Part shown: positions 2,604 through 48,666 of the stretch, piece after piece | Layout of the letters: the number at the start of each line of letters is the position of its first letter | Numbering within the stretch: position 1 is the first letter of the stretch | DNA from: Tetramitus jugosus | Lineage: Eukaryota; Protista; Heterolobosea | Direction: 5' to 3' | NCBI GenBank assembly: GCA_937625935.1 | Contig: CALMHQ010000002.1 | Location: 1-49,460 of the forward strand | Length of the DNA stretch: 49,460 bases | Program-made: the position numbers and the translations under genes | Notes under the pieces: generated by a model | The model's database searches: none | What the model saw: the letters and a program-made list of their open reading frames with translations, nothing else | What the model was told of the DNA's origin: nothing

Positions 2604-2637
2604 ATTGATTGACTACATAAAAAAAAAATAAAAAAAA

Positions 2638-3813
2638 ATGTTTAATAAATTAAATAATATAATATTAGCAGACGCTAGTTTAAGAAGGGTATATCAATTT
2701 TTAGTATATTATCCAACACCACAAAATATAAATTATTTTTGGAATTATGGATTTATGGCAGGGATGTTTTTAGGTATACAATTAATTAGTGGTATATTTT
2801 TATCAATGTTTTATACACCACATATAGATTATGCATTTGATAGTGTACAACATATAATGAGAGATATAAATTATGGTTGGTTTATAAGATATGCTCATTC
2901 AAATGGAGCATCATTTTTTTTTATAGTAATTTATATACATATATTAAGAGGTATTTACTATGGATCATATTTAAAACCAAGGTTATTTGTATGGTTCTCT
3001 GGAGTAATTATTTATATTTTAATGATGGGTACAGCATTTTTAGGATATGTGTTGCCTTGGGGACAAATGAGTTATTGGGCAGCAACAGTAATTACAAATT
3101 TTTTAACTGTTATTCCAGTAATAGGTAAAGATGTAGTGTACTGGGTATGGGGAGGATATGCTATTAATAACTCAACATTAAATAGATTCTTTAGTTTACA
3201 TTATTTATTACCTTTTGTTATAGCTGTTTTTGCATTATATCATATATATACATTACATAAATCAGGTAGTTCAAATCCATTAGGAATAAGAACAAGTAAA
3301 TTAGATAAAGTAAACTTTTATCCATTTTTTTTAGTAAAGGATTTATTTGGTTTATTTATAGTTTTTATAGTATATATTATATTTGTAATATATTATCCAG
3401 AATTATTAGGACACACAGATAACAATATTAAGGCTAATCCACTAGTTACTCCAAGTCATATAGTACCAGAATGGTATTTTTTACCAATGTACGGTATTTT
3501 AAGATCAATTGAAAGTAAGACATATGGAATAATATTAATGTTTTTATCAATGTTAGTTTTATTTGTATTACCAGTTTTAGATAAAGGTAGTGAAAGAAAT
3601 AATCATTTCAGAATGTTTAATAGAATGATGTTTTGGTTATTTACATTTAATTTTATATTTCTAGGATATTTAGGTGGTCAATTACCAGTATATCCATATA
3701 TACAATTAGGTGTCATTTGCTCTCACTTTCACTTATTTTATTTTTTAATACTGCCTATTATAAATGGGGCCAAATTTCAAAATTATTTCACTTTATTTAA
3801 AGTAAAATATTAA
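2638..3813 (+). CDS. cob: Apocytochrome b
   Basis: HSNGAS, LPWGQMSYWA, PEWY motifs. Confidence 0.99.
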   Translation: MFNKLNNIILADASLRRVYQFLVYYPTPQNINYFWNYGFMAGMFLGIQLISGIFLSMFYTPHIDYAFDSVQHIMRDINYGWFIRYAHSNGASFFFIVIYIHILRGIYYGSYLKPRLFVWFSGVIIYILMMGTAFLGYVLPWGQMSYWAATVITNFLTVIPVIGKDVVYWVWGGYAINNSTLNRFFSLHYLLPFVIAVFALYHIYTLHKSGSSNPLGIRTSKLDKVNFYPFFLVKDLFGLFIVFIVYIIFVIYYPELLGHTDNNIKANPLVTPSHIVPEWYFLPMYGILRSIESKTYGIILMFLSMLVLFVLPVLDKGSERNNHFRMFNRMMFWLFTFNFIFLGYLGGQLPVYPYIQLGVICSHFHLFYFLILPIINGAKFQNYFTLFKVKY

Positions 3814-3909
3814 TTTTATATAAATATATACTGTAAATAAGTTTGTTTTTTGTGCGAAAAACATATAACCAATCCATGGATTAAATGGAAAAAAATTGAA
3901 ATAAAACTA

Positions 3910-5097
3910 ATGTTAGCTGAGCAATCTCAACAAATAAAAAATTTTATGTTGAATTTTGGTCCACAACATCCGGCGGCACATGGGGTATTGCGGTTAATAT
4001 TAGAATTAGATGGTGAGATAATAAAGAATGCTGATCCACATATAGGACTTCTACACAGGGGAACCGAAAAATTAATAGAGTATAAGACTTATGCACAAGC
4101 TTTACCATATTTTGATAGATTGGATTATGTCTCAATGATGTGTCAAGAGCATACTTTTTGTTTAGCTGCTGAAAAATTATTAAAATGCAAAATACCATTA
4201 AGGGCACAATATATACGTGTTATTTTTTCAGAAATAACACGTATATTAAATCATTTATTAGCAATCACTACACATGCTTTAGATGTAGGTGCTTTAACAC
4301 CGTTTTTGTGGGCTTTTGAGGAACGTGAAAAATTAATGGAATTTTATGAGCGTGTTTCTGGTGCAAGAATGCATGCTAATTATTTTAGAATTGGAGGAGT
4401 TGTGTATGATATACCTATAGGTTTATTAAAAGATATATCTATTTTTATACAACAATTTGCATCTAGAATAGATGAGATTGAGGAAATGCTTACTACTAAT
4501 CGTATTTGGAAACAAAGATTGATAGAGGTAGGTAAAGTTAATAGTCGACAAGCTATGGATTATAGTTTAAGTGGTCCAATGTTAAGATCTACTGGTATTG
4601 CTTGGGATTTACGTAAATCTGAACCTTATGAAATATACAGAAAGTTTTCTTTTGCTATTCCTACAGGTGTATGCGGAGATAGTTATGATAGATATCTTAT
4701 AAGAATAGAGGAGATGCGTCAGAGTATAAATATTATAAATCAAGCGATTAATCAAATTCCTTTAGGATTAGTAAGAGTAGATGATCATAAAATTACTCCA
4801 CCATATCGTAGTCAGATGAAAACATCTATGGAGTCATTAATACATCATTTTAAATTATATAGTGAAGGTATAAGTGTGCCTCAGGGTCATAGTTATGGTT
4901 GTGTAGAAGCACCTAAAGGAGAAACAGGTGCTTATTTGGTGTCTGATGGTGGTAATAAACCATATAGATGTAAAGTTCGTTCTCCTGGTTTTATGCATTT
5001 ACAGGCATTAAATAGTATAGTAGTAGGGCATATGATTGCTGATTTAGTTACCGTAATTGGTACTTTAGATATTGTTTTTGGGGAAGTTGACAGATAG
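3910..5097 (+). CDS. nad7: NADH dehydrogenase subunit 7 (first ATG 3910; frame open from TTG 3850)
   Basis: [15 protein letters not shown] ... DIVFGEVDR. Confidence 0.98.
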
Positions 5098-5167
5098 TTT
5101 TATACTATAAATTCGCATTATAAGCTTTTAGCACACATTACAAACAAAAAAAAAATATAAATAAAAC

Positions 5168-6253: not shown

Positions 6254-6276
6254 TTTTATTGGTTATAATTAATTTA

Positions 6277-6284
6277 TTGATTAC
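6277..6284 (+). promoter_or_regulatory. TTGATTAC upstream element (representative copy). Other exact copies: 715, 6672, 8983, 17432, 32802, 33301, 34338, 37167, 37618, 43606, 45280.
   Basis: Same-strand octamer, mostly 28-30 nt upstream of start codons. Confidence 0.75.
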
Positions 6285-6305
6285 TTTTATATTTTTTTAT
6301 ACAAG

Positions 6306-6671
6306 ATGTTTTATTATTTAAATGAATATGGTGATTTTGTATTTTATGCATTAGTAATGTTTGCTATTTGTACATTAGTATTAGGTATTAGTTATTTAAT
6401 AACTATTAAAAATCCATATAATGAAAAAAATACAGGGTATGAGTGTGGTTTTGATCCATTTTCAGATGCAAGAGAACCATTTTATGTAAAATTTTATTTA
6501 ATTTCTATATTATTTATTATTTTTGATGTAGAAGTTGTATTTTTTTTTCCATGGGCAATAAGTTTAAAGCAATTATATTTTTTTGGGTATTACGTTATGT
6601 ATATTTTTATATTAATTTTATTAATAGGTTTTGTGTATGAATGGAAAAAAGGATCATTAGATTGGGATTAA
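6306..6671 (+). CDS. nad3: NADH dehydrogenase subunit 3
   Basis: YECGFDP, FDVE, EWKKGSLDW. Confidence 0.98.
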   Translation: MFYYLNEYGDFVFYALVMFAICTLVLGISYLITIKNPYNEKNTGYECGFDPFSDAREPFYVKFYLISILFIIFDVEVVFFFPWAISLKQLYFFGYYVMYIFILILLIGFVYEWKKGSLDWD

Positions 6672-6700
6672 TTGATTACATAACTAAATAAGTTAACAAT

Positions 6701-6967
6701 ATGTTTATACATTTAATTGTACCAGTATTATTATTTATTATAGGTATATTTGGATTATTTTTAAGCAGAAAAAATATAATATTAATTATTATGTCTTTAG
6801 AATTATTATTATTAGCAGTGAATTATAATTTTTTATTTTTTTCTGTATATTTAGATGATTTAATGGGTCAAGTGTTTTCTTTATTTATACTAACTATTGG
6901 AGCCTGTGAATCATCTATTGGATTAGCATTATTAATTTGTTACTACAGAACATATAAATATGTGTAG
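6701..6967 (+). CDS. nad4L: NADH dehydrogenase subunit 4L
   Basis: MSLELLLL, ACESSIGLAL. Confidence 0.96.
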   Translation: MFIHLIVPVLLFIIGIFGLFLSRKNIILIIMSLELLLLAVNYNFLFFSVYLDDLMGQVFSLFILTIGACESSIGLALLICYYRTYKYV

Positions 6968-6985
6968 TATTTTATAAATAACGAT

Positions 6986-8950: not shown

Positions 8951-9089
8951 TTTTTATACTCTTTGTATATATTATATATTTATTGATTACTTTATATTTA
9001 TTTTTATCTGGTAAACTCTTTGTCCTATAAAAGATTCATTTAATGTTGTATGCAAAATATTATTAAAGTGCAAATTTTATTGTACTATT

Positions 9090-9401
9090 ATGAAATCAAT
9101 ATTTAAATATTATAATAATAATAATTACTCAATTAACACTTTAAATCATATACATAGTCAGATACTACCTATTAAACAAAATAAGTATAAAATGTCAAAT
9201 CAATTAAGAATAATGAATACAATTTCTATTGCATTCATTATTAAATCTAATACTTTTTCTTATTTTCAGTTAACTGGTGCTATTAAACGAAAAAAAAAAG
9301 CTTTAAGCTTTGTAGGTAGTGTATGTGTCGCTAGTGATTTATCAGGTATAAAAATTTTTGTATACACTGAAAATCATTCTCCATATAATAGATTTAAATA
9401 A
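9090..9401 (+). CDS. rpl19: Probable ribosomal protein bL19 (divergent)
   Basis: Basic. C-terminal half FQLTGAIKRKKK...SGIKIFVYTENHSP resembles bL19 FEGVVIAR...GVGVERTFPLHSP. Confidence 0.55.
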   Translation: MKSIFKYYNNNNYSINTLNHIHSQILPIKQNKYKMSNQLRIMNTISIAFIIKSNTFSYFQLTGAIKRKKKALSFVGSVCVASDLSGIKIFVYTENHSPYNRFK

Positions 9402-9421: not shown

Positions 9422-10135
9422 TTATAATTGACATATATATACATTATAAAGTAAGTAATACTGTAATATATAATTTGATAAATATATATATATATTTAAT
9501 GGACACATTATTAATAATATTAATACAGTAACAAATATAATATATATATTATTATTAAATATTATATACACTATTGTAATTAAAAAAATCCAAATATAAG
9601 ATATAAAAAATATATATAAGTATATATTTAAGTAATTTTGTAAATTTAAATTTACATCAAATATTATAAAATTAATTTCTTGATAATTATTATAAAAAGA
9701 ATTAAATATTAAAAATATAATATAATTATTATATATGAATATAAATAAATAAAAATAAAAAAATAAAAATACTGAAAATGCTGTAATGTAACTCATCTCA
9801 TGTTTATAAAAAGATGATTTAAAGTACATTAGTATTTGTATTATTATGAATGGCATTAATATTATAAAAGATATTATAATTATATAATACATTAATATAT
9901 AATTATAATCTTGTATTGAATAAGAGATCTGTAATGATGGAAGTATATAATTTTTAGTAGTATTTATTGGGTAAATAAATTCAGTATTTGAGATATTTAT
10001 AATATTTTTTATATATTTGTATGGTGTGAATGATAAATTTATTTTTGTTATTGGTATAAATATAAAAAGGAGAAAATAATCAAAATAAATAAAATAAAAT
10101 AATAATAGTGGTATTATTGAAAATAATATAATCAT
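9422..10135 (-). CDS. tatC: Twin-arginine translocase TatC (divergent)
   Basis: Very hydrophobic; PFIIIQILMYFKSSFYKHE matches TatC PxxxYQxWxFxxPGLYxxE. ATG at 10135; the upstream part of the ORF-track call overlaps trnR. Confidence 0.75.
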   Translation of the reverse strand: MIILFSIIPLLLFYFIYFDYFLLFIFIPITKINLSFTPYKYIKNIINISNTEFIYPINTTKNYILPSLQISYSIQDYNYILMYYIIIISFIILMPFIIIQILMYFKSSFYKHEMSYITAFSVFLFFYFYLFIFIYNNYIIFLIFNSFYNNYQEINFIIFDVNLNLQNYLNIYLYIFFISYIWIFLITIVYIIFNNNIYIIFVTVLILLIMCPLNIYIYLSNYILQYYLLYNVYICQL

Positions 10136-10170
10136 ATATACTTTTATATAAGTATAGTAATTGTTACTTT

Positions 10171-12772: not shown

Positions 12773-12844
12773 GACTAAGTAGCTCAGTGGTAGAGCAGTT
12801 GACTGTTAATCAATTGGTCATAGGTTCAAATCCTATCTTGGTCT
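12773..12844 (+). tRNA. trnN: tRNA-Asn(GUU)
   Basis: Cloverleaf, loop CTGTTAA, paired acceptor stem. Confidence 0.93.
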
Positions 12845-12856
12845 ATTATTATTGAT

Positions 12857-12929
12857 GAGTGAGTATGTCAATTGGTAGACTCTCCGTTTTGGGTATGGAA
12901 TAATGTAGGTTCGAATCCTGCCTCACTCA
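12857..12929 (+). tRNA. trnP: tRNA-Pro(UGG)
   Basis: Acceptor GAGTGAG/CTCACTC, loop TTTGGGT. Confidence 0.9.
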
Positions 12930-13635: not shown

Positions 13636-13667
13636 TTGAACACTTATATAAAGTATATAGAATAATT

Positions 13668-14342
13668 ATGTATAATAATAAAATAAGAGATAAAATAAAA
13701 AATAAAATAGTTCTATTATTGCACAGCTCTATAAATAAATTTCAATTAAATGAAATGTTAACATTTAGTTCATCTTCATTTTTGAATAGAGTAGACAAAG
13801 ACACAAATCAAGAGGCAAGGATTTATATTCAGAGTTTGGGCAGAAACACTTTTATTACTGTTTCATTGGATGATAAATTGATTTATAATAGATCTATTGG
13901 TCAATTTAAAGTATCTAATTCAAAATTAAAAAAAAAAGATAAACGTAGAATGATGTATATTCATTCATTTTTACAATCTTTTAATCATTATTTTTTTAAG
14001 ACATTAACTAAAAAATACAATATAAAAAATGTATCATTTTACTTAAATTGTTTACCTAGAATTGTAAATGCGATATTAAAAGATTTTTCTTTTAAGTATT
14101 ATAGTCGTTTATATTTTGCAAGAAAGGCTCATCGTAAATATATAAGATTTAAAAATAGAAGATATTTAAAAAATAAAAAATTATTTGCAAGACTAAAAAT
14201 AAAAAAAAAATTTAAAAAAAAATTATATTTACTTGATTTTATACGTAAACATAGATATAATAAATTTTTTAGTATACGTAGTATTAACTATTTAGGTAAA
14301 ATTTCTTATAATGGTTGCAGAAAAAAAAAGAAAAAAATATAA
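13668..14342 (+). CDS. rps11: Ribosomal protein uS11, with basic insertion
   Basis: IYIQSLGRNTFIT and C-terminal SYNGCRKKK; follows rps13. Confidence 0.85.
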   Translation: MYNNKIRDKIKNKIVLLLHSSINKFQLNEMLTFSSSSFLNRVDKDTNQEARIYIQSLGRNTFITVSLDDKLIYNRSIGQFKVSNSKLKKKDKRRMMYIHSFLQSFNHYFFKTLTKKYNIKNVSFYLNCLPRIVNAILKDFSFKYYSRLYFARKAHRKYIRFKNRRYLKNKKLFARLKIKKKFKKKLYLLDFIRKHRYNKFFSIRSINYLGKISYNGCRKKKKKI

Positions 14343-14511: not shown

Positions 14512-14679
14512 TTTATTTAATTTAATTAATAAGCAATTGTATATCAAATAATATATTTTTACTATAGTACTAACTTAAACTTTTATTAATTATGTGTAGT
14601 TAATTAATTGTATTATTAACTCTATATTGCATGTTCAATTGTATACTGATAACTTGTAATGTGTAATATTAAGTATACA

Positions 14680-15501
14680 ATGTTAAATTTTAACGTATTT
14701 CAATATTTCTTTTTTGGAGAGGTTGCAAATGATACAATGTTTAATATTGCAATGTTATATAAAGAAACAGTTATTATGATGTTATTGATTCTATATGTAG
14801 TATTATCTATAATTTTTTATATTATAGAAAATTTTAATCATGAAACAAATAAATTTCCAATTTATTTTAGTAAAGAAACAGAATCAACATTAGATATTGT
14901 TTTTGTATTATTCCCAACAGCAATAATAGCATATTTAATTATTCCTGCAGTAGGGTATGTATATAATATTGAATATAGTGCAGCTCAAGTGGAAACATTA
15001 TTTAATGTTTATGTAATAGGTCATCAATGGTATTGGTCTTATGAATATGAAGTAAATATTTGTAATGATAGTAATTTAAATTTTTTAGGAAATGATTTTA
15101 TTAAACAAAAATTAACTTTTGATAGTTTAATTGATTTATCAGCATCTGATTCTAGATTACTAGCGGTAGATAAAAGATTAATATTACCTTCTAGTTCCTA
15201 TATTAATTTATTAATTACTTCTGAGGATGTTATACATTCTTGGGCACTTCCTCAATTAGGTATAAAGGTTGATGCAATACCAGGTAGATTAGCAGAATAT
15301 GTGTTTTTTGCTAATTTTAATGGTATTTATTATGGTCAATGCTCTGAATTGTGTGGTGTAAATCATGGTTTTATGCCTATTTGTGTTGAAACTATTTCTA
15401 GTGATATTTTTTTAGATTTTTTATTAGTTAGTATAAATTTTAATCCAAGTAAGTTATTATTAGATAATTGTGATGGATTTATATTAAATAATGAAATTTA
15501 A
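14680..15501 (+). CDS. cox2: Cytochrome c oxidase subunit 2 (alternative ATG at 14659)
   Basis: GHQWYWSYEY, DVIHSW, CSELCGVNHGFM CuA motif. Confidence 0.98.
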   Translation: MLNFNVFQYFFFGEVANDTMFNIAMLYKETVIMMLLILYVVLSIIFYIIENFNHETNKFPIYFSKETESTLDIVFVLFPTAIIAYLIIPAVGYVYNIEYSAAQVETLFNVYVIGHQWYWSYEYEVNICNDSNLNFLGNDFIKQKLTFDSLIDLSASDSRLLAVDKRLILPSSSYINLLITSEDVIHSWALPQLGIKVDAIPGRLAEYVFFANFNGIYYGQCSELCGVNHGFMPICVETISSDIFLDFLLVSINFNPSKLLLDNCDGFILNNEI

Positions 15502-17417: not shown

Positions 17418-17447
17418 ATTATTAAAAATTATTGATTACTTATTTAT
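17418..17447 (+). repeat. 30-bp dispersed direct repeat, copy 1 (identical to 37604..37633)
   Basis: ATTATTAAAAATTATTGATTACTTATTTAT at both loci. Confidence 0.85.
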
Positions 17448-17460: not shown

Positions 17461-18006
17461 ATGAATATTTTATTATTTGTTGGAGTGTTTATTGTAGTTT
17501 GTACTACACAAAATTTACTAGGCATTGGGTGTGATTCATCACAAGCTTTATTGGATAATGATTTAAAAGAAATTCATGATAAAGAAATGCAAGCTTTATT
17601 GGATCATGATTCAAGAGAAATTCATGATAAAGAAATGCAAGCTTATGATAAAGCAGAAAAAATGTTGTTAAAGCAACAAGAGATAGAAAAAGAAAGTGTA
17701 TTACAAATACAGTCTTTAATAACAGCTTCTTATGAAGCTGATTCTATTGTTCATGAGAAAATGTATAGAGTGGTATCAGCATACAGGGATCATCTTTGTG
17801 ACAACATAGAAAGAGATGGATTCTCATTAACTAGAGAAGATAGATCACTAGTTTTTTGTCAGGTTCATGATATGTTTATGGCGGTAATAGGTCAAGTTGA
17901 ATCTAAGAAAGAGGCATGCGAAATAGTTGATGCTTTGTATAATCAAAAAGTATTAAACAACATGGACGGTATAGAAGAAATTATTCAACGTACTAGAACA
18001 CATTAA
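17461..18006 (+). CDS. orf181, unknown: hydrophobic N-terminus, acidic body with internal 16-aa repeat
   Basis: ATG ORF with TTGATTAC exactly 29 nt upstream, as for housekeeping genes. Confidence 0.7.
   Translation: MNILLFVGVFIVVCTTQNLLGIGCDSSQALLDNDLKEIHDKEMQALLDHDSREIHDKEMQAYDKAEKMLLKQQEIEKESVLQIQSLITASYEADSIVHEKMYRVVSAYRDHLCDNIERDGFSLTREDRSLVFCQVHDMFMAVIGQVESKKEACEIVDALYNQKVLNNMDGIEEIIQRTRTH
17542..17644 (+). repeat. 48-bp tandem repeat, about 2.1 copies, in orf181
   Basis: Units start at 17542, 17590 and 17638 (QALLDNDLKEIHDKEM / QALLDHDSREIHDKEM / QA). Confidence 0.92.
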
Positions 18007-18307: not shown

Positions 18308-19962
18308 AGAGTAGGGTTTTATTCTGGCTCGGAGTGAATGCTACTGATATGCTTAACACATGCAAGTTGAACGTATCTTTTTAATGTTAGAATTCTTTTA
18401 TAAGAATAAGTAAAGATTTACGTAGCGAACGGGTGTAAAATGTAGATTGAATGTTACTTAAAAGTTTGGGATGATTGTTTTTACATAAATACCGAATACA
18501 ATTAAAGTATTTAATATAAATAGTACTTATAATAAAGGCTTATAAAGTCGCTTTTAAATACGCATCTATAGTTTTAGGTAGTTGGTGTGGTAATGGCACA
18601 CCAAGCCAGACATGCTTAGCTGTTCTGAGAGGATGTACAGCCACATAGAGACTGAGACAAGGCTCTGGCTCCGTTTGGAGGCAGCAGTGGGGAATCTTGG
18701 GCAATGAGCGAAAGCTTGACCCAGCAATATCAATAGAGTGAACGAAGATTTTTAATCGTAAAACTCTTCCTTTAGCTAAGATTATGACTTAAACTAAAGA
18801 TTAGCGCTGGCAAAATCTCGTGCCAGCCGCCGCGGTAATACGGGTAGCGCTAGTGTTATTCCTCTTGATTGGGCGTAAAGGGTGTGTAGGCGGTATAATA
18901 AGTTAGAAATGAAAGACTATGCTTATCAATTGTAAATTTCTAAAACTATTATACTAGAGTAATATGAAAGATAGCGGAACCTTTAACATCAGAGTTGAAA
19001 TGCGTATACATTAAAGGGAACCCCGAAGGCGAAAGCAGCTATCTATTTATTTCTGACGCTGAGGCACGAAGGCATGGGGATCAAATAGGATTAGATACCC
19101 TAGTAGTCCATGCTGTCAACGATGAGTATTAAATGTCTTACTATTTAGTGGGATGTTACAGCTTACGCGTTAAATACTCCGCCTGGGAAGTACGATCGCA
19201 AGATTGAAACCTTAAGAAATTGACGGAGGTTAGTTGCAAGCGGTGGAGCATGTGGTTTAATTTGATAAAACGCGTAGAATCTTACCAATCTTTGATATAT
19301 CCATAATAGATAGTTAGAACTTATTATTTATAATAAACTAAAGACTTGTCTTTCTATCTCATAACATATTTATTTAAAATATGTTATGAATCTTTGTAAA
19401 ATATTTTTTTTTTAGAATATTTGCTTATATAAAAATTGGATACAGATGCTGCATGGCTGTCGTAAGGCCGTGCTGTGAAGTGTTAGATTAATTTCTTTCA
19501 ACGGCCACAACCCCTATCCTAAGTTGTTTTACTATTCAGTAAAGAGAAACTTGGGATATTGCCTACGTAATGTGGGATGAAAGTAGGGACGACGTCAAGT
19601 CATCATGGCTCTTATAGATTGGGCTACACATGTGCTACATTGGTAGATACAAAGAGAAGCAAAGATGTGAATCTGAGCAAATCTAAAAAATCTATCTTAG
19701 TTCGGATTGTTCTCTGAAACTCGAGAACATGAAGTTGGAATCGCTAGTAATCGTGGATAAGAACGCCACGGTGAATTTGTCACCTAACCTTGTACATACC
19801 GCCCGTCACGTCACGAAAGTTGGTTGTTCTGTAGGTTGTATTTAAATTTATTATAATTATTTATTAATGAAATAAAGTATCAGTACAATCAAAGGGTGAT
19901 CGATGATTGAGATGAAGTCGTAACATGGTAGGCGTAAGGGAACTTGCGCCTGGAATAATGTA
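18308..19962 (+). rRNA. rns: Small subunit rRNA (ends approximate)
   Basis: CTGGCTC, GTGCCAGCCGCCGCGGTAA, GGATTAGATACCC, GTACATACCGCCCGTC, AAGTCGTAACATGGTA. Confidence 0.98.
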
Positions 19963-19966
19963 AATT

Positions 19967-24150: not shown

Positions 24151-26379
24151 TTGATACAATTTGATATTTTATTTATTGTAAACGAATACACTACTATTTT
24201 TTTTATATATTATATGCAGAAATATTTAAATTGGAAACGTTTACTAGTTAAGTACATTAAATACAAAAAAAAAGGTGATTATTTTTTAACTCTTCAAAAT
24301 ATTAAATATTATAATAGTAATTTATTTCAATATAAGTATAAATATTATAATCGTTTATTGCAAAAACAAATATCTTCTGGTTTTTTTTTCCCTAGTGTAG
24401 AAATTCAAAATGTTGAAAATTATTATTTAGGAAAGCATTTTATTGTGCATAATACTCTTGATTATTTTAAGGATAGTTTAAATAAGTATTTAAAAAAAAA
24501 AAAATCAATATACAAGTACAATTATAATACAGCGGAACCATTAAATTCATATTTAAATATTTTTTGTACATTATGTAGTATTGAAAATGTTTATTCTTTT
24601 TATAATTTTTCTAATGTTATGTATTTTATGGACTACGATCACACAGAAGTAGATTTAATGAATTTTGTACATTTTGATTATACTGGAGGTTCTTCTGAGA
24701 TATTACATCTAGTATTATTTCATAATGATATTATTTATAATAACTTTAGTTTTGAATTTTTTGAAAATAAAAATACTATTTCCGCTCATTATATACGTAC
24801 TTCTAAATTATTTGATCTTAATTCTTCTATTTTCACCGAGATGTTAATAAGTAATTCTAATAGTAAAGTATGTTATAATAATTATGCTAGTTATGATTAT
24901 TTACATTCATATTTTTTTTTAAATATGAGGGATAAATTAAAAAAAAATATAAAATATGAATTACAAAAAAGATATACAGAAAAATTAGAATACTTAGCTG
25001 AATTTAAAATTAGAATGGAAGAATATTTAGCGCGTATAAAAGAAGAAACAAGAATAAAATCTGATAAAAGTATTGGAGAAAAACAGAAAGAAAGATTAAT
25101 AATTGAAGGGCACCGTAAACAAAAAGAGGCTGAAACACAAAGAGCAGAATTTAAAGAAAAAACAAGTAAAGAGTTTATACTTACTCAAATTGATTTTTCT
25201 AATTATACATATTTCAAGCCGTCTTTAAATGATGTACATAGTCTACCGATTAATAATTTTGATTATTTATCTAATTTAAATAATACTAATAAATTTATTA
25301 GTAATAATATATATCAGTATGAATATGAAAATATAAATAATCAAATTTCTATTTATGATAAAAATACAAAATCAGGTGCAATTAATTCTATAGTAGATAA
25401 AATTAGTATTAATAACTTAAATTATTATGAATTAAATATACAAGAACCTATCAATAAAGAATTACAGTTAAAACAAAATAAATATAATTTTGAAAAATAT
25501 AATAAATTTTTTATGGATTTATTGAATGGATTATTAAATTATTCTGAATTACGTAGCTTTGATATTGAAAATTTATATAAAAGTAAAAATAAATTTGAAA
25601 GATTATTTAGTAATAGATTTAAGATATTAAAAATTATGTATAATAATTATAAATTAAATACTAAATTTCCAATTAAATATTTATATTTTTCAAAGTCTAA
25701 AGTACAAACTAGTAGTAACATTAGTAATAACACTATATTATATTATCGAAAAAAAAATATATATGTTCAACTATTAATTCCTAGAATTAGTAATTTATTA
25801 TATTATCCTTCCTCATACTTTTTTGATGCAAAGCATAATTATTACACTTATTGGGATATTAACTGTCTATATTATAAATTTTTAGGTTTTTTAATTAAGC
25901 ATGGTAAAAGACATAAAGCAGAATCTATATTAAGTAATAGTTTTTCTTTTCTAAAGAACTTAAGTTTATGTAATCCATTATATTTATTTATGAAGGCTAT
26001 TTATAATGGTCAAACTTTTTTTGAATTTACAAAACAAAAAAAACAGACTAAATCTATTTTAATTCCTAGATTTGCACCTTTAAATAAACGAGTTAGAATT
26101 TCTATGCGTTTAATTACTCAAAATATTAGAGATCATGATAATTTACGTAAAATGAAAAAATCAAAAAAATATAAAGTAAGTACTTCTTATTTATTATCAA
26201 ATATACTTATTTCTTATTTTTTCAAAATAGGTAAAGTAAAAACTGATCTAAAAACTAATGTAACTAGTGCTTTTAAGCAAAAACATTTATTACGAAAAAA
26301 TGTTGGAATATTTGTATACAATAGATTATTAAAATTTTTAGCTTTTCGTAAAATTAGAGGATATCATATTAGCAAATAG
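24151..26379 (+). CDS. rps7: Ribosomal protein uS7 with about 550-570 aa N-terminal extension (TTG 24151 or ATG 24214)
   Basis: C-terminal KFLGFLIKHGKRHKAESIL...NPLYLFMKAIYN...IP is uS7-like; single uninterrupted frame. Confidence 0.78.
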   Translation: MIQFDILFIVNEYTTIFFIYYMQKYLNWKRLLVKYIKYKKKGDYFLTLQNIKYYNSNLFQYKYKYYNRLLQKQISSGFFFPSVEIQNVENYYLGKHFIVHNTLDYFKDSLNKYLKKKKSIYKYNYNTAEPLNSYLNIFCTLCSIENVYSFYNFSNVMYFMDYDHTEVDLMNFVHFDYTGGSSEILHLVLFHNDIIYNNFSFEFFENKNTISAHYIRTSKLFDLNSSIFTEMLISNSNSKVCYNNYASYDYLHSYFFLNMRDKLKKNIKYELQKRYTEKLEYLAEFKIRMEEYLARIKEETRIKSDKSIGEKQKERLIIEGHRKQKEAETQRAEFKEKTSKEFILTQIDFSNYTYFKPSLNDVHSLPINNFDYLSNLNNTNKFISNNIYQYEYENINNQISIYDKNTKSGAINSIVDKISINNLNYYELNIQEPINKELQLKQNKYNFEKYNKFFMDLLNGLLNYSELRSFDIENLYKSKNKFERLFSNRFKILKIMYNNYKLNTKFPIKYLYFSKSKVQTSSNISNNTILYYRKKNIYVQLLIPRISNLLYYPSSYFFDAKHNYYTYWDINCLYYKFLGFLIKHGKRHKAESILSNSFSFLKNLSLCNPLYLFMKAIYNGQTFFEFTKQKKQTKSILIPRFAPLNKRVRISMRLITQNIRDHDNLRKMKKSKKYKVSTSYLLSNILISYFFKIGKVKTDLKTNVTSAFKQKHLLRKNVGIFVYNRLLKFLAFRKIRGYHISK

Positions 26380-29842: not shown

Positions 29843-29916
29843 TTATATGTATTTACTTTTTATTGTTTGTTTTTTTATAAAAAACTTTATATTAATTCAT
29901 TATACATAAAAAAAAA

Positions 29917-31487: not shown

Positions 31488-31574
31488 TTTTCATTAATAA
31501 TTAATTGGTTACATTATAAAGTATTAACTATTAGTAGTTGCATTAGTAGATTACATTATGTATTTTATATTTTT

Positions 31575-32429: not shown

Positions 32430-32524
32430 TTAATTTGTTATATTGATTTTTTTATATTCTTTGTCCTAAAAAAGATTCAAATTAGTTGTTGATTTTTATT
32501 AAAAAATATAAAAATACATGTAAC

Positions 32525-32743: not shown

Positions 32744-32829
32744 TATATTATTAAATATATTATTTAGTATCATTTAACAATATTTTTATATTTATTATTT
32801 ATTGATTACATAAATTATTATTATTTTTT

Positions 32830-33291: not shown

Positions 33292-33329
33292 TTATTTTTA
33301 TTGATTACTTATTTTATACATATATATAT

Positions 33330-33659
33330 ATGCCACAAATAGATATTTTTATAGTAGTAAGTCAATTACAATTTTTATTATTTTTTTTTTTAGGATATTT
33401 TTATTTTTTAAAAAAAATATTACCATTAATTAGTTTAGAAATGAAATTTAGACAAAAAGTATTATTATTTCATATGAATTGGTTTGCTAATAATATAAAT
33501 CAAACAATATATTATAGAGAAACTTTTAGTACTTTATTAGTTAAGTTCAGATCTTTATTAGAAATATTTAATTTTATAATAAAAAAACGTGATCTTTTTT
33601 ATGGTATTTATGATATCGATTTAATGTTAGTTCGTTTTCAATATAGACAATTTAAATAA
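33330..33659 (+). CDS. atp8: ATP synthase subunit 8
   Basis: MPQID start, TM segment, ILP...KFR. Confidence 0.92.
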   Translation: MPQIDIFIVVSQLQFLLFFFLGYFYFLKKILPLISLEMKFRQKVLLFHMNWFANNINQTIYYRETFSTLLVKFRSLLEIFNFIIKKRDLFYGIYDIDLMLVRFQYRQFK

Positions 33660-34313: not shown

Positions 34314-34365
34314 TATTTTATTACTAATATTTTTTTTTTGATTACTTTTTTTTATAATTAATATT

Positions 34366-35088
34366 TTGAAACAATATATAAATTTATTACTTAAACAAAT
34401 ATATATTTTTATACACAATAATAAAAAATTAAATGAATTACACAAACTATCATTAGAAGTATATAATAATTCATTAAATAAATTTTATAATCAAATTTAT
34501 AATAATCGGGTTGTAAATTATTATAAATCATTTTCTGGCACTGAAGAAAATACATGTTTACACAATCAATCAAATTTAGATACATTATATTATAATAATA
34601 ATTTTATACTTTATAAAAATATAAAAACTTTATTTTTATTAGAGGTTTCTAGAGGTATGTTTTTTGCTTTAAAAAATATATTTGATAGGAAAGCTACTAT
34701 TAATTATCCTTTTGAAAAAGGACCAATTAGCTCACGTTTTCGTGGAGAACATGCATTACGTCGTTATCGTACTGGGGAAGAAAGATGTATTTCTTGTAAG
34801 TTATGTGAGGTTATATGCCCTGCTTTAGCTATTACTATTGATTCTAGTATGCGTAGTAATGGTAGTAGAAAAACTGATAGATATGATATTGATATGACAA
34901 AATGTATTTTTTGTGGACTGTGCCAAGAAGCTTGTCCTGTAGATGCTATAGTAGAAGGCCCTAATTTTGAATACTCTACTTTTTCACATGATGAATTATT
35001 ATATGATAAAAAAAAATTATTATTAAATGGTGACATGTGGGAAATTGAGATATTTAATAATTTAAAAAAAGAAAATATTTATAGATAA
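34366..35088 (+). CDS. nad8: NADH dehydrogenase subunit 8 (probable TTG start)
   Basis: [33 protein letters not shown]. Confidence 0.97.
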
Positions 35089-37136: not shown

Positions 37137-37196
37137 GTAGTATATTAATGTTTGTTTATTATAATATTGATTACATATTTAAATATAATATATAAT

Positions 37197-37595
37197 ATGA
37201 TACATGAATATTTACCAGCGATGATACAAGCATATTTACCAACTATAGTTGGTGGTTTACATTTGACATTAGTTATTTTATTTCCTGGAATTGAATTAGA
37301 GTTTTACGAACAACTTGCAAGTTTACAAGCTTATTCTTCACAAATTATGTACGATATGGAAATGTCTAGAAATGTAGAGATAGAAGCTTATTTAGAATTA
37401 AGGAATCAAGTCGAAAAACTTTTTATTGAAATTAAATTGGATGGATTCTGCAGTGGATATGAGGAAAGGGAATTATTCAAACCTTGTATTGAAGAAGTAG
37501 TAAAAAGTGAACTTGAGTCTGGTTTAAGTGGTTATAAAGATATTCCTACTAAAATTAAATTTTTAAATATTATTCTTTCTGATTTAACAAAATAG
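37197..37595 (+). CDS. orf132, unknown: hydrophobic N-terminal segment then acidic helical region
   Basis: ATG at 37197 lies 30 nt after TTGATTAC (the ORF track starts at TTG 37152). Confidence 0.6.
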   Translation: MIHEYLPAMIQAYLPTIVGGLHLTLVILFPGIELEFYEQLASLQAYSSQIMYDMEMSRNVEIEAYLELRNQVEKLFIEIKLDGFCSGYEERELFKPCIEEVVKSELESGLSGYKDIPTKIKFLNIILSDLTK

Positions 37596-37603: not shown

Positions 37604-37633
37604 ATTATTAAAAATTATTGATTACTTATTTAT
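37604..37633 (+). repeat. 30-bp dispersed direct repeat, copy 2
   Basis: Identical to 17418..17447. Confidence 0.85.
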
Positions 37634-37902
37634 AAAAGTATATAGTAAGTAGTATTAGATATTACTTATAAATAGACTGAACTTTTAGTAATTCTAAAAA
37701 AATAGAAGTTTTTAACTGTTATTGAAGTTAATTATTTAGAAGCACTATTTCTAATACTACTGATGAAGTATTAGCAAGAGAAATATTTGAAGACTTTTTA
37801 AATTTATAAGTTGTGTATGTTTAATTAATATTAATTTATAACTTTAATTTGATAACTTATAAATTTTTACAAATCGTTTGGATTATTTTTTATTTTGTTT
37901 AA

Positions 37903-40868: not shown

Positions 40869-40944
40869 TACCTTTTATTAACATTATAATCGTGTTTGTT
40901 TTTTACTTTAAAAAACTTAATAAATATATATATATATATATATT

Positions 40945-43034: not shown

Positions 43035-43609
43035 TGATACATAACTATTGTTCTTTTTTATATTTTTTTCTGTATAATTATGTATATATTTATATTGAGC
43101 GTGGAAATATTATATGTGTTAGTAAATTAGGTAGTTTTAAATGTAAATTTAATTTATATTTTTTTTTATACAATAGTAATAGTTTATTTATTTTTAAATT
43201 TTTTTTAATTAATTCATTAATAATTTTTAATGACTTGAAACAATACACTAAAAATAAAATTAATTTTCAATTATTTATTTCTTTATTTTTAGTATCTATT
43301 TTTTCAGGTTTTAGAGCTAAGTTTAAAATACATGGTAGAGGTTACAAATTACATAAAAAAAATAATAATTTAGTTTTTAAATTAGGATATAGTCATTTAA
43401 TTTTTAAAACTTTAGATTTTGCTTTATTTTTAAAAAAAAAAGAAAAAAAAAAAGTTTTTTATACACTAATTTCCCTAAACCATCAATTGTTAACTAATAC
43501 TATTAGTACTTTTAGATCGTTTAGAATACCTAATATATATACTAAAAAAGGTATATTAAATAATACTAAAAAAATAATATTTAAAATTGGTAAGATTAAT
43601 ATGGTTTGA
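43034..43609 (+). CDS. rpl6: Ribosomal protein uL6
   Basis: GRGYK, LGYSH, PNIYTKKGI. Confidence 0.92.
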   Translation: MIHNYCSFLYFFLYNYVYIYIERGNIICVSKLGSFKCKFNLYFFLYNSNSLFIFKFFLINSLIIFNDLKQYTKNKINFQLFISLFLVSIFSGFRAKFKIHGRGYKLHKKNNNLVFKLGYSHLIFKTLDFALFLKKKEKKKVFYTLISLNHQLLTNTISTFRSFRIPNIYTKKGILNNTKKIIFKIGKINMV

Positions 43610-43633
43610 TTACTTATTAGTTCGTATTTTATT

Positions 43634-44134
43634 ATGTGTGATTACATTTTTTGTTTTTCACATCTAGAGGATAAACAAATGCAATTGTTAAAAACTGAAT
43701 TTTTTACTAAATATGGATATTTTATATTTTTTTTAACTCGTAAAAATTTTGATTCTTTTTTTAATATTGATCATATTAATTTAAAAAAAATATTAACTGG
43801 TAAATATTTATTAGTTAGAGGTGTTCATAATAAATCTTTAGGTATGGTTATTGATGAAATTAAATCATTGTTAATGTACGTAGATGGTAATTCTATGAAT
43901 TTATCATTTTTTTGTTTAAATTATAATAATAATTATTATTTTAATGATTTTTTTTTATTATCTAATAATTATAATGTAAAAAGTTTATATAATAATATAT
44001 TATTAAATATCAAACATTATAATTATTTAAATTTAATAATATATTATTATTCATTTTATTATTTTTTTTTTCGCATTTTTAGTTTGAATTCATTAATTGT
44101 TTTTAACGCTTTTATTAATCCAGTATATATATAA
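43634..44134 (+). CDS. orf166, possible ribosomal protein uL10
   Basis: [13 protein letters not shown]...KN recalls the uL10 N-terminus; size fits; TTGATTAC 28 nt upstream. Confidence 0.5.
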
Positions 44135-44656: not shown

Positions 44657-44661
44657 TATGT

Positions 44662-44733: not shown

Positions 44734-44746
44734 TTTAGTTTACTAG

Positions 44747-44766
44747 TCATGAGATTTATCTCATGA
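44747..44766. repeat. Perfect 9-bp inverted repeat between trnQ and rpl11
   Basis: TCATGAGAT-TT-ATCTCATGA. Confidence 0.75.
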
Positions 44767-44785
44767 AATTAATTATAAAATTATT

Positions 44786-45283
44786 ATGAAAAATAAAAAA
44801 AATATAATTGAACAAAAACAATCAGTAAAAACTCTTGAAGTTCTAGTAAAATTAAATATTAATTCTATGGAAGCTTCTAGTAAAGAACCTATCGGTCCTA
44901 CTTTAGGTCAGTATGGTTTACCTATTAATGATTTTTGTAATTTATTTAATAATTCTTCTACTATTTATGAAGAACAAGTACCTTTAAGGGCGCACATATA
45001 TATATACACAGATAAAACATTTGAATTAACAATCAATATTCCTACATTATATTATTTTTTAAAATCTTCTTTATCTTTAGAAGAAATAGATTTAATTAAA
45101 TTTAAAAGAAAACCTGGTTACATTGATTTAAGAACTATTTATTTGCCTATATTTAATAAAAATATGGTATATACAATACTTAAATATGTTACTGATAATC
45201 TTATATTTGTTATTAATTTAAAAAGTTTATTTAAGAAAATTCTTGGTATCATTTATTCTTCAGGTTTTTTTTTTTTTGCTTGA
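44786..45283 (+). CDS. rpl11: Ribosomal protein uL11
   Basis: PIGPTLGQYGL..DFCNLFN, YTDKTF. Confidence 0.94.
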   Translation: MKNKKNIIEQKQSVKTLEVLVKLNINSMEASSKEPIGPTLGQYGLPINDFCNLFNNSSTIYEEQVPLRAHIYIYTDKTFELTINIPTLYYFLKSSLSLEEIDLIKFKRKPGYIDLRTIYLPIFNKNMVYTILKYVTDNLIFVINLKSLFKKILGIIYSSGFFFFA

Positions 45284-45308
45284 TTACATTTGTTCTATCT
45301 AAGTCGTT

Positions 45309-46208
45309 TTGTTTGTTGGCTTTTTAGATAAAATTCATAGTAGTTTATTGCACTATTATCGAGAATTAAATCTTAAACGAATAAATTTAATAAATGAGAA
45401 ATTTATTAAATTTCCAAATACTGACGACTTTATTTGTTATCGTATTTTTAAATACGATAGTACTATTCGTGAAAAACCGTCAGTAGATACTTTCTTTTTG
45501 AGAGCACATGAACATGCACCAATGCTATTGGATACTTTAATATATTTAAAAGATATTAAAGATGATTCTTTAGCATTTAGACGTTCTTGTAGGGAAGGTA
45601 TTTGTGGTAGTTGTGCTATGAATATTAATGGAGTAAATGCATTAGCATGTACATATCGGATAGATCAACATGTATCATATATTTTTCCATTTTTAAATAT
45701 TTATCCATTGCCACATATGGTAATTGTTAAAGATTTAGTCATTGATATGAAACATTTTTATAATCAATATCGTTCTATTAATCCATTTTTAATTAAACCT
45801 TATGAAGTTAGGCTAATTTCAGATATTTCAAATAGTGTACATAATATTAGTGTATACGTTTCTAGACCAACTATTGAGAATTTGCAGTCAGATTCTGATA
45901 GACGTATGTTAAATGGTTTATATGAATGTATATTATGTGCTTGTTGTACAACAAGTTGTCCTAGTTATTGGTGGCACACTGAAAAATACTTAGGTCCTGC
46001 TGTATTATTACAGGCATATAGATGGATAATAGATTCTAGAGATTTATCATTTGAATCTAGATTAGAATTTTTGAATGATACTTATAAATTAAAAAGATGT
46101 CATTTAATATTAAATTGTATCAGATGTTGCCCTAAAAAATTAAGTCCTGCAACAGCTATATCTAACATTAAGTATATGATACACTTATATAATGTTGAAA
46201 AAGTATAA
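45309..46208 (+). CDS. sdh2: Succinate dehydrogenase iron-sulfur subunit (probable TTG start)
   Basis: RRSCREGICGSC, CILCACCTTSCPSYWW, CHLILNCIRCCPK. Confidence 0.98.
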   Translation: MFVGFLDKIHSSLLHYYRELNLKRINLINEKFIKFPNTDDFICYRIFKYDSTIREKPSVDTFFLRAHEHAPMLLDTLIYLKDIKDDSLAFRRSCREGICGSCAMNINGVNALACTYRIDQHVSYIFPFLNIYPLPHMVIVKDLVIDMKHFYNQYRSINPFLIKPYEVRLISDISNSVHNISVYVSRPTIENLQSDSDRRMLNGLYECILCACCTTSCPSYWWHTEKYLGPAVLLQAYRWIIDSRDLSFESRLEFLNDTYKLKRCHLILNCIRCCPKKLSPATAISNIKYMIHLYNVEKV

Positions 46209-46249
46209 AAATTATTTAAATTGACAACATTATATCTTATTTTTATTAT

Positions 46250-46798
46250 ATGAGCAAATATTTAATTTCATTATTACCAAATTATATATTTAATATTCAT
46301 AAAAAAGAATATTATTATATTACTACACATAAACAATATTTAAATAATTTATTGAGTTTTTTTTTTTTACATATGAATACTCAAGTTAAGATTTTTGTAG
46401 ATTTATGTACTATTGATTTAATTCAGAATAAAAGTAGATTTTTATTAGTGTATCAATTTTTATCCCATTATTTTCATAATCGATTTTTTATTAAAATTAA
46501 TTTCAGTGAAATAGATAGCGTATATTCTATTTGTTCATTATTTCCAAGTGCTTCTTGGTACGAACGAGAATCTTGGGATTTATTTGGTATAAATTTTATA
46601 GGTAATCCTGATATGCGACGTATACTTACAGATTATGGATTTCAAGGATTTCCATTGCGTAAAGATTTTCCACTAAGTGGTTTTGTAGAAGTATCTTATT
46701 GTGAAATGATTAAGAACATTAAATACTCTTCTATTAGTTTTATACAAGAATTTCGTTTATTTGATACTAAAAGCCCTTGGGAGTTTTATCATAAATAA
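46250..46798 (+). CDS. nad9: NADH dehydrogenase subunit 9
   Basis: WYERESWDLFG, RRILTDYGFQGFPLRKDFPL. Confidence 0.98.
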   Translation: MSKYLISLLPNYIFNIHKKEYYYITTHKQYLNNLLSFFFLHMNTQVKIFVDLCTIDLIQNKSRFLLVYQFLSHYFHNRFFIKINFSEIDSVYSICSLFPSASWYERESWDLFGINFIGNPDMRRILTDYGFQGFPLRKDFPLSGFVEVSYCEMIKNIKYSSISFIQEFRLFDTKSPWEFYHK

Positions 46799-46825
46799 CT
46801 GATTACTTCCCTGTTACATTTTTTA

Positions 46826-48352
46826 ATGTATTATAATCATAAATTAATATCTAATAATTTTCAAAAAATAGGAGCAACAATAAAAATTGTTGTTTTTTTT
46901 TTATTTAATATTTTAAATATACTAGATAGGTATTTAAATATTAGTAGTGTTTATAATTATTTTATAAAGATTCCAGTTCCTTTAATTATTTCTTGGATAT
47001 CACATATTTTTTTTAGTATTATTTGGATAATGTTTGATCCATTTCATTTAGGTTTTCAACATTGCATTCAAATAAATATTTATGATTTATATTTAAATTT
47101 TGGTATTGATGGATTGTCATTATTTTTTATATACCTTATTTCTTTTTTATTACCATTATGTTTAATACATATATATTATTCTAATAATTTAACTTTTTCA
47201 GCAAGAAGTTCTTATGGTGTTGCATTGTTAAGTATTAGTTTTTTATTGGTTATAGTATTTTATACTTTAGATTTATTAGTTTTTTATATTTTTTTTGAAG
47301 GTATTTTAATACCTTTTTTTGCATATATTGGTATATCTGGATATAAAAAACGAAGAGTACATGCTTCATTTTTATTTTTTTTCTATACTTTATTTGGATC
47401 ATTATTTATGTTGATTTCTATTTTTTCTATATATTTACATACTGGTACTACTGATTTAGAATTACTTTGGTTAAGTGAGTATAGTAGCATCAATGAACAT
47501 TTTATTTGGTTTGCTTTTTTTCTATCATTTGCTATTAAAGTACCGATGTTTCCTTTTCATATTTGGTTACCTGAAGCTCATGTAGAAGCCCCAACTGAAG
47601 GTTCTGTTTTTTTAGCTGCTATTTTATTAAAATTAGGAACTTATGGCTTTTTACGTTTTTTATTTCCTATTTTTCCAAATGCAACTTATTATTTTTCACC
47701 ATTAGTACTATTAATGGCTACTCTTTCTGTATTTTATACTTCTTTAACTACATTAAGACAAATAGATATAAAAAAAATTATAGCTTATTCTTCTGTAGCG
47801 CATATGAATGTATGTATGATTGGACTGTTTTCATTTCACATTACTTCTTTAAATGGTTCTATTTTTTTAATGATCGGACATGGTATCGTTTCAGCTGGTT
47901 TATTTTTTATGGTTGGTTTTTTATACAATAGATATCATAGTAAAATAATTAAATACTATAGTGGACTAGTTCAAACTATGCCACTATTTTCAATTTTTTT
48001 TTTCTTATTTTTATTAGGTAATATTAGTATGCCATTAACTAGTAACTTTATAGGTGAGTTATTAGTTATAATAGGAACTTTTAATTCTGAAAATTATATA
48101 CCTTTATTTTTTGTGGGTTTTAGTATTTTAATATGTTCTATATATTCTTTATGGTTATACAATAAAATGATTTTTTTAATGCCAAATAATAGATTTATTC
48201 AACATTACTTTGATCTTAATTTTTTAGAATTAAGTATAGTTTTACCACTAGTTCTATTTATGTTATTTTTAGGTATTTATCCAAATCCATTTTTTCAAAT
48301 AATTAATCCTGCGGTTAATTATAATTTTTTTGAATTATTAAGTATTCATTAA
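46826..48352 (+). CDS. nad4: NADH dehydrogenase subunit 4
   Basis: GIDGLS, HIWLPEAHVEAP, IAYSSVAHM, FIGE. Confidence 0.99.
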   Translation: MYYNHKLISNNFQKIGATIKIVVFFLFNILNILDRYLNISSVYNYFIKIPVPLIISWISHIFFSIIWIMFDPFHLGFQHCIQINIYDLYLNFGIDGLSLFFIYLISFLLPLCLIHIYYSNNLTFSARSSYGVALLSISFLLVIVFYTLDLLVFYIFFEGILIPFFAYIGISGYKKRRVHASFLFFFYTLFGSLFMLISIFSIYLHTGTTDLELLWLSEYSSINEHFIWFAFFLSFAIKVPMFPFHIWLPEAHVEAPTEGSVFLAAILLKLGTYGFLRFLFPIFPNATYYFSPLVLLMATLSVFYTSLTTLRQIDIKKIIAYSSVAHMNVCMIGLFSFHITSLNGSIFLMIGHGIVSAGLFFMVGFLYNRYHSKIIKYYSGLVQTMPLFSIFFFLFLLGNISMPLTSNFIGELLVIIGTFNSENYIPLFFVGFSILICSIYSLWLYNKMIFLMPNNRFIQHYFDLNFLELSIVLPLVLFMLFLGIYPNPFFQIINPAVNYNFFELLSIH

Positions 48353-48419
48353 TAATTTATATTTATTTTTCCTATGAACGTGATACATTTTTCATTTACT
48401 ATATATATAATATCTTATT

Positions 48420-48632
48420 ATGGCTGCTCCTAAAAAAAAAAAAACTCATATGAGAAAAAATATTAAATATAAAAAATCAAATAATGTATTATTAAATAGA
48501 GTATTTGGTTTTAAAATGCAAAAAAATCGATTTATGAACCATACTATTGATTATTTTACTAATAGTCAGCGTATTTCTCATGTAGATGAAAGTAGATTAA
48601 AACTTCGAACAGATGATGCAAGATTTAAATAG
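48420..48632 (+). CDS. rpl32: Probable ribosomal protein bL32
   Basis: MAAPKKKKT..RK N-terminus typical of bL32; no Zn-finger cysteines. Confidence 0.65.
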   Translation: MAAPKKKKTHMRKNIKYKKSNNVLLNRVFGFKMQKNRFMNHTIDYFTNSQRISHVDESRLKLRTDDARFK

Positions 48633-48666
48633 TTGACTACTTAAGAATCATATTATATTATATACT

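Follow-up and report, generated by a model that had tools for sequence, protein, structure and literature searches.

The 49,460-nt stretch analysed here (the window) is the complete circular mitochondrial DNA (mtDNA) of Tetramitus jugosus, contig CALMHQ010000002.1. It carries 46 protein genes on the plus strand, two rRNAs and about 20 tRNAs, with nad2 spanning the origin and a tatC-like gene (near 9422-10140) as the sole minus-strand gene. The question raised by this molecule is whether a short word that recurs about 20 nt ahead of many of its start codons (hereafter the box) is a signal and, if so, how it is read. The box was found to be a real, conserved signal of Tetramitus-clade mtDNA, and from sequence comparisons we lean slightly towards the view that an RNA-binding factor common to many genes binds it outside the ribosome footprint and positions initiation.

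The window was compared with parts of seven related mtDNAs showing 98 to 66% protein identity to it, namely L090, G85 (locus L085), G81 (L081, L130, L133), G83 (L083), G86 (L086, L131), G88 (L088) and G93 (L093, L134). Spacing was analysed in 73 box-start pairs from seven genomes, L090 being excluded as near-identical. The matrix used to score window genes was trained on the relatives only, with the window excluded. Later counts and queries exclude window positions 33378-33414, which lie within the atp8 coding sequence and are adjoined by the atp8 box and leader.

A shared box upstream of start codons

The exact 8-mer TTGATTAC was present in 13 copies in the window, compared with 3.95 expected from shuffles, and ranked top among the G/C-containing 8-mers of the upstream windows. 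All 12 plus-strand copies were intergenic or overlapped the upstream stop codon, although intergenic DNA makes up just 3.5 of the 49.5 kb. The remaining copy was located on the minus strand inside rpl5. Nine exact copies were found 20-22 nt ahead of a start codon. The exact 8-mer ended 17-29 nt before the start in 9 of the 46 genes (shuffle mean 0.02, maximum 2 in 5000), and exact and variant boxes together preceded 14 of the 46 (shuffle mean 0.10). For 9 of 12 intergenic copies to land 19-22 nt ahead of a start, P was ~3e-11. The shuffle and strand counts that had been proposed as a check on the box thus showed a positional peak far above shuffles and an enrichment in plus-strand intergenic DNA.

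With the relatives-trained matrix, 14 window genes were recovered (0.27 expected), and the scores of genes with and without a box were clearly separated. The consensus was TTGATTACWT, and the box is 10 nt long, not 8, because a T occupies the second base past the 8-mer in 61 of 62 copies. Strong boxes were located 19-26 nt ahead of 14 window genes and weak ones ahead of rps11 and cox2, so that the same word precedes 14-16 of the 46 genes, belonging to complexes I, II, III and V and including orphan open reading frames (ORFs). The box covers about -30 to -19 relative to the start in the window. Its distance to the upstream stop codon ranged from -4 to 303 nt (0 or -4 in 6 of 16), which confirms the earlier view that the spacing follows the start codon and not the upstream stop.

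The 16 boxes ahead of genes are given below with strand and, in brackets, the spacers of the corresponding boxes in relatives; the coordinates and distances given for them in a previous reading made from the sequence alone (the sequence-only reading) were all correct.

2609..2618, +, variant box TTGACTAC, 21 nt ahead of the cob ATG at 2638 (G81 and G86, 23 nt each)
6277..6286, +, box, 21 nt ahead of the nad3 ATG at 6306 (G86, 20 nt; G81, 35 nt with a hairpin)
6672..6681, +, box adjoining the nad3 stop, 21 nt ahead of the nad4L ATG at 6701 (G86, 21 nt; G81, 44 nt with a hairpin)
13636..13645, +, weak box TTGAACAC with a matrix score of 8.1, 24 nt ahead of the rps11-like ATG at 13668
14646..14655, +, weak box CTGATAAC with a score of 6.0, 26 nt ahead of the cox2 ATG at 14680
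17432..17441, +, box, 21 nt ahead of the orf181 ATG at 17461
31547..31556, +, box TAGATTAC, 20 nt ahead of the atp3 ATG at 31575 (G85, 22 nt; G86, 24 nt with a TTG start)
32802..32811, +, box, 20 nt ahead of the atp4 ATG at 32830 (G85, 20 nt; G88, 26 nt; G93, 26 nt with a variant box; G81 and G83, 39 nt with a hairpin)
33301..33310, +, box, 21 nt ahead of the atp8 ATG at 33330 (found in every genome of the box clade; G81, 47 nt; G83, 38 nt)
34338..34347, +, box, 20 nt ahead of the nad8 TTG start at 34366
37167..37176, +, box, 22 nt ahead of the orf132 ATG at 37197 (orthologous box and leader in L090)
43606..43615, +, box whose TGA terminates rpl6, 20 nt ahead of the orf166 ATG at 43634 (G85, 22 nt; G81 and G83, 23 nt; G93, 23 nt)
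45280..45289, +, box whose TGA terminates rpl11, 21 nt ahead of the sdh2 TTG start at 45309
46221..46230, +, box TTGACAAC, 21 nt ahead of the nad9 ATG at 46250 (G81, 25 nt; G86, 27 nt; G93, 30 nt)
46799..46808, +, box CTGATTAC, 19 nt ahead of the nad4 ATG at 46826 (G81, 25 nt; G86, 21 nt; G93, 35 nt without a hairpin)
48633..48642, +, box TTGACTAC adjoining the rpl32 stop, 26 nt ahead of the nad2 ATG at 48667 (G81 and G86, 23 nt each)

Five further copies, three exact and two variant, had been omitted from that reading:

715..724, +, exact box with no frame at box distance, 23 nt past the nad2 stop and 218 nt before trnI (not in the corresponding spacer of G81 and G86)
8983..8992, +, exact box between nad5 and the rpl19-like gene, 32 nt past the stop of the former and 99 nt ahead of the ATG of the latter
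31505..31514, +, variant TTGGTTAC, a second box further upstream of atp3, at 62 nt (present in L090 too)
37618..37627, +, exact box within a 30-nt duplicate of the orf181 leader, with a decayed frame behind it (box mutated in L090)
37849..37858, +, variant TTGATAAC, 46 nt ahead of rpl2 (no counterpart in L090)

The box at 8983 is probably a relic, because G81 carries the box of an extra ORF (orf291) at that place. Among the copies previously set apart as looser, those ahead of rps11 and cox2 are indeed weak, whereas the nad2 copy matches as well as the cob copy. The window contains three TGA stops in total, two of which lie within boxes (43606-43609 and 45280-45283). In G81 and G83, the TGA of rps10 is likewise found within a variant box, ahead of nad8 (L081 9969; L083 9993).

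Conservation and distribution of the box

The box was found ahead of start codons in all seven relatives, with spacers of unrelated sequence, in agreement with the earlier observation that the spacer letters are not conserved. Gain and loss per gene were evident: a box precedes cox3 in G86 only, nad6 in G86, G88 and G93, and rps8 in G93, and most lineage-specific or orphan ORFs have one. Two loci, L128 and L132, were typed as Naegleria-type by a Cob of 497-547 aa and a different gene order, and showed only 44-46% identity to the window (six proteins). In these loci neither the box nor any other shared upstream word was found above shuffles. The expected extension to Naegleria therefore did not hold for these loci, and the box appears to be confined to a Tetramitus-related clade among the sampled genomes.

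A metagenome scan with Nad8 returned chiefly bacteria and other taxa, in which the box was not present, a viral scan gave no match, and the sole match of a genome scan was the misbinned mtDNA L093. This Tetramitus-clade contig (L093/L134, JARDZP010000009.1) is filed under a bacterial metagenome-assembled genome (Haloplasmataceae), and its proteins consequently bear bacterial names in public databases.

In L090, a tandem copy of box and leader is located ahead of the orf132 orthologue (12790-12865); the first box has an ATG at 17 nt and the second at 22 nt, the latter agreeing with the start in the window. Besides, a family of orphan ORFs of 249-288 aa, 24-44% identical, occupies several positions in G81 and G83 (L081 15937-16686; L133 16718-18356; L083 15966-16832). 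Of its members in G81, orf249 and orf253 have a box and orf282 has none.

Spacing between box and start codon

The shortest spacer among the box-start pairs was 19 nt. The median was 21 nt in the window and about 26 nt in G88 and G93, the ranges were 20-27 nt in G86, 23-35 nt in G93 and 21-47 nt in G81, and the spread within single genomes was 7-26 nt. The fixed distance proposed previously is thus nearly true of the window, but spacers vary from 19 to 35 nt over the clade and reach 47 nt with hairpins. The box distance has a strict lower limit and a lenient upper one.

Eleven G81 spacers measured 21-27 nt and six measured 35-47 nt. Each of the six long ones (atp4, atp8, nad3, nad4L, rpl19 and orf253) contained a single hairpin, around which 24, 25, 24, 26, 22 and 30 nt, respectively, were open, and at least 14 nt were unpaired beside the AUG in all six. 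The same geometry was seen in 6.5% of other G81 intergenic windows and in 4-10% of dinucleotide shuffles. For atp8, G81 and G83 (the latter by eye) share the stem and keep 6+19 open nt, with loops that differ by 9 nt. These comparisons point to a distance that would be measured on single-stranded RNA, and are good, though not final, evidence for it.

The nad4L spacer of G81 (L133 12946-12997) also contains a five-codon frame that opens, 20 nt from the box, with an ATG inside the hairpin stem. Coupling via this frame is an alternative to looping out.

Start codon choice and gene gaps

The first ATG of nad8 in the window is codon 98 and that of sdh2 is codon 72; both lie past conserved sequence, and therefore Nad8 and Sdh2 must begin upstream of them. 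A TTG was found 20 nt from the box in nad8 and 21 nt from the box in sdh2. The corresponding ATG starts are located 21 nt from the box in G85 nad8 and 18-25 nt from a box in sdh2 orthologues. For atp3, the TTG start of G86 at 24 nt aligns with Met1 of the others, bypassing an out-of-frame ATG at 8 nt, and the window spacer likewise has an out-of-frame ATG 3 nt past the 8-mer. The conserved start of cox2 is not the in-frame ATG 5 nt past the weak box; in G93, a perfect box lies 28 nt ahead of cox2, which begins at the matching Met. No more than 8 nt separated the box from seven of the nine AUGs inside spacers (p 0.03), and the other two, at 18 and 20 nt, were in frame.

Gaps between protein genes fell into two groups, one of 18 nt or less, all boxless, and one of 24 nt or more. 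A box was found in 12 of the 13 gaps of 24-60 nt, and many longer gaps have gene-specific structured leaders in its place. We infer that genes following the gaps of 18 nt or less start by coupling.

A proposed protein-bound site for initiation and the alternatives

From the aligned sequences we further infer that the box is read, and the start selected, at the RNA level. The box would be an RNA element, UUGAUUACWU, in the 5′ leaders of mRNAs that lack both coupling and a gene-specific leader. A single sequence-specific protein, which is probably either a helical-repeat factor encoded in the nucleus or one associated with the small subunit, would bind it just beyond the mRNA exit of the ribosome and tether the small subunit, and an AUG or UUG about 20-27 unpaired nt downstream would then enter the P site. 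The box would thereby stand in for the Shine-Dalgarno (SD) mechanism, and the bound protein may shield RNA ends too. In yeast, the mitoribosome footprint ends at -16, activators bind about 30 nt upstream and stem-loops bridge longer distances (PMC12916500); the 19-nt minimum fits a footprint that reaches about -16 with a protein bound beyond it.

The sequence-only reading had left a protein site and a cleavage or promoter signal side by side. An element read in RNA is favoured over a promoter because the long G81 spacers hold hairpins and tRNA clusters have no box, although the ruler has proved elastic and some conserved boxes have no start nearby. Among the protein readers proposed there, a mitoribosomal extension was weakened in the case of uS7 (window 24151-26379; L093 too): its N-terminal extension is a weak candidate, since the protein ranges from 472 to about 1040 aa over the clade and, beyond G85, just its C-terminal 210-230 aa align, so that the extension is not conserved. 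Two other long proteins, Rps3 (629 aa) and Rps4 (771 aa), are alignable over most of their length.

In a broader and more tentative version, which we think possible but doubtful, one factor of general use, which may be a permanent part of the Tetramitus mitoribosome, would read the 10-nt word as a genome-wide, protein-read equivalent of SD and gauge the unpaired distance to AUG or UUG. If this were true, copying the box with its spacer would suffice to switch on any new frame.

Several observations weigh against a protein-bound initiation site. The elasticity of the ruler (19-35 nt over the clade) weakens it as a ruler. The geometric criterion for the hairpins was set post hoc, after the data had been seen; hairpins as such are frequent in G81 intergenic DNA (21 of 32 tiles, p 0.17), and by hairpin strength alone the long spacers were not separable from other intergenic DNA of G81. 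The 35-nt spacer of G93 nad4 is hairpin-free, the minimum-energy folds of two G83 spacers differ from the by-eye stem and do not leave 24-25 open nt, and a palindrome inserted in an old spacer keeps the open length by default. No depletion of the box from coding sequence was detected in 147 kb, where the expected counts of only 2-9 give low power. Finally, a perfect box is kept after cox1, 99-106 nt ahead of rpl2, in G85, G81 and G83 with no start at box distance, and a perfect box in G86 after atp9, 95 nt ahead of atp4, has no start nearby. The window, L090 and G88 carry an orphan ORF at the post-cox1 place. Lost ORFs may have left these boxes behind as relics, which seems to be the case at 8983 and 37618, but the conservation of these boxes suggests that they have a further function, either in protecting ends or in transcription.

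End protection is central to the view, which we rate as unlikely, that the box is a barrier or processing site of the PPR10 type. A bound protein or guided nuclease would set the downstream 5′ end and the upstream 3′ end, the 20-nt minimum would only clear the ribosome, and the effect on translation would be indirect. Chloroplast PPR barriers (PPR10, HCF152) are likewise intercistronic, and their 3′ edge stays 20 nt or more clear of the start; their footprints end 20-60 nt before it for the same reason, and besides setting RNA ends they are able to promote the translation of mRNAs that have no SD (PMC3326301). The box lies in this intercistronic position, its closest approach to the upstream gene is the shared stop codon, genes following tRNAs are mostly boxless, and the conserved boxes after cox1 and atp9 would be accommodated. 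The PPR barriers have footprints of about 25 nt, with one or few sites per protein over 20-60 nt, whereas the box is short, occurs in up to 20 copies per genome and clusters at 20-27 nt. A barrier does not account for a box that keeps to the start in wide gaps, for hairpins that would shorten long spacers or for UUG starts at box distance. Nor does it account for the cox3 box of G86, directly behind a tRNA where tRNA processing already yields a 5′ end, and the depletion in coding sequence that a cutting signal might show was not seen. An initiation site and an end barrier are compatible, and both can hold.

The box might also be a promoter of the nucleus-encoded, phage-type mitochondrial RNA polymerase, which seems to us slightly less probable still. 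Transcription would begin in or just after the box, and the leader of 19-27 nt would be the shortest that the ribosome accepts, kept by compaction. Known promoters of this type are short, strand-specific upstream consensuses of 8-10 nt, such as the yeast nonanucleotide, and the box is similarly short and strand-specific; boxes ahead of the rpl2 operon fit, and those on newly acquired ORFs would supply transcription. These promoters also precede rRNA and tRNA units and have no fixed tie to start codons, whereas none of 34 tRNA clusters had a box (within 150 nt), none was found within about 860 nt of rns in the window, and the minus-strand tatC lacked one in three genomes. Small adjacent genes (nad3/nad4L, atp4/atp8, sdh2/nad9/nad4) would each need a promoter, and the hairpin shortening of long leaders would be unaccounted for.

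Very improbable is an upstream promoter element, -35- or TATA-like, that places the transcription start at the start codon and gives leaderless mRNAs. TTGA does resemble the sigma-70 -35 hexamer, 14 of the 16 window boxes are at 19-22 nt, and AUGs close to the box would stay untranscribed. The spacing in G86, G93 and G81 is nevertheless too loose for a DNA ruler, a -10-like hexamer was found in only 11 of 73 (a count confounded by the ATG itself), and promoter-like matches were under the shuffle mean. No rpo genes were noticed among the ORFs, and hairpins in an untranscribed spacer would be pointless. A sigma-70 -35 element as such was rejected, since neither a regular -10 hexamer 16-18 nt downstream nor rigid spacing was found.

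That the box is a functionless repeat spread by leader duplication is hardly credible. Leaders have indeed been duplicated, as in the orf181 leader copy at 37604 and the tandem copy in L090, but the conservation of 10 nt down to 66% protein identity between unrelated flanks, with start spacing kept through gain and loss of the box per gene, largely refutes this view.

Comparison with known systems

The box had been judged not to act by SD pairing, and this was upheld. The 3′ tail of rns (19906..19966, +) contained no anti-SD, no CCUCC-like run and no complement of the box, and the best duplex of the box with the last 61 nt of rns was -2.5 to -3.7 kcal/mol. Pairing with rRNA via helix 44 was rejected, as a 10-bp wobble match (19894) was at chance level (P 0.37). 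An SD element was rejected too, since there is no complement in the tail, the minimum is 19 nt versus the 5-15 nt expected, and the box is not purine-rich. In jakobid mitochondria, which are also discoban, SD motifs form a shared upstream word at a set distance from many genes, but they are purine-rich, lie 7-15 nt from the start and pair with the rRNA 3′ end (PMC3590771); the box lies at 19-27 nt.

The geometry of the box agrees with that of two systems, the chloroplast PPR footprints and the yeast activators (Aep1/Aep2/Atp25C, Aep3, Pet111, Pet309). The activators operate without SD and anti-SD, have their site just upstream of the footprint about 30 nt before the start, use stem-loops to draw distant sites nearer and have been proposed to replace SD (PMC12916500). 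The box lies where such sites are found, about 16-38 nt before the start. The yeast activators are mRNA-specific, with unrelated sites, whereas the Tetramitus box is one 10-nt word for 14-16 of 46 genes. The box would act like a yeast activator site minus the mRNA specificity, and departs from an SD element in both pairing and position. Conserved blocks 5′ of start codons in plant mitochondria (Pring et al., 1992, cited in PMC3865367) are, as far as the cited account goes, similarly shared and suspected of a role in translation, but are described there as other sequences, anywhere within 100 nt of the start and loosely spaced.

No earlier description of the box was found in the searchable literature (including PMC7900873, PMC5421314 and PMC11106597), with most subscription papers outside the search, and it is apparently an undescribed signal. 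Yeast is the only case in which the choice of start codons on leadered, SD-less mitochondrial mRNAs is understood in detail; there, every mRNA depends on a separate activator, and the mRNAs have no sequence in common. One short consensus at a set distance ahead of about a third of the genes offers a direct handle on this process in an amoeba that is culturable and has a sequenced nuclear genome, and natural hairpin and UUG variants already act as spacing tests. The box is a tractable case of a general expression signal in one lineage, missing from the Naegleria-type relatives sampled. It is also useful for annotation, as it fixes the starts of nad8, sdh2 and atp3 and flags orphan ORFs as probably expressed.

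Other leader motifs and neighbouring genes

A second leader motif was observed in boxless genes, consisting of GTTTG followed by a hairpin of a U-run and an A-run, before nad6, rpl16 and nad7. Its window sites are:

3814-3909, leader of nad7
29843-29916, leader of nad6
37876-37902, leader of rpl2
40869-40944, leader of rpl16

A CGTTTGG-type word is located 21-25 nt ahead of rpl2 (39 nt in G86). The motif was found in 4 of 11 window leaders compared with 0.37 in shuffles, is kept in relatives (L085, L081, L083, L086, L133), and may be the site of a second factor.

An rpl19-like gene was found in the window (9090-9401), L131 (16381-16710) and L133 (16288-16602). Its identity rests on a weak Pfam Ribosomal_L19 match of the G86 orthologue (E 4e-4), and no mention of rpl19 was found in a limited check of the heterolobosean mitogenome literature. 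The tatC-like identity of the minus-strand frame at 9422-10140 rests on a weak Pfam match of the G86 orthologue as well; this gene begins just beyond the antisense of trnR, without a box. A near-identical 21-nt stretch is shared by the leaders of rpl19 (9018-9038) and atp9 (32457-32477), and look-alikes of the atp9 copy are present in G85, G86 and G88.

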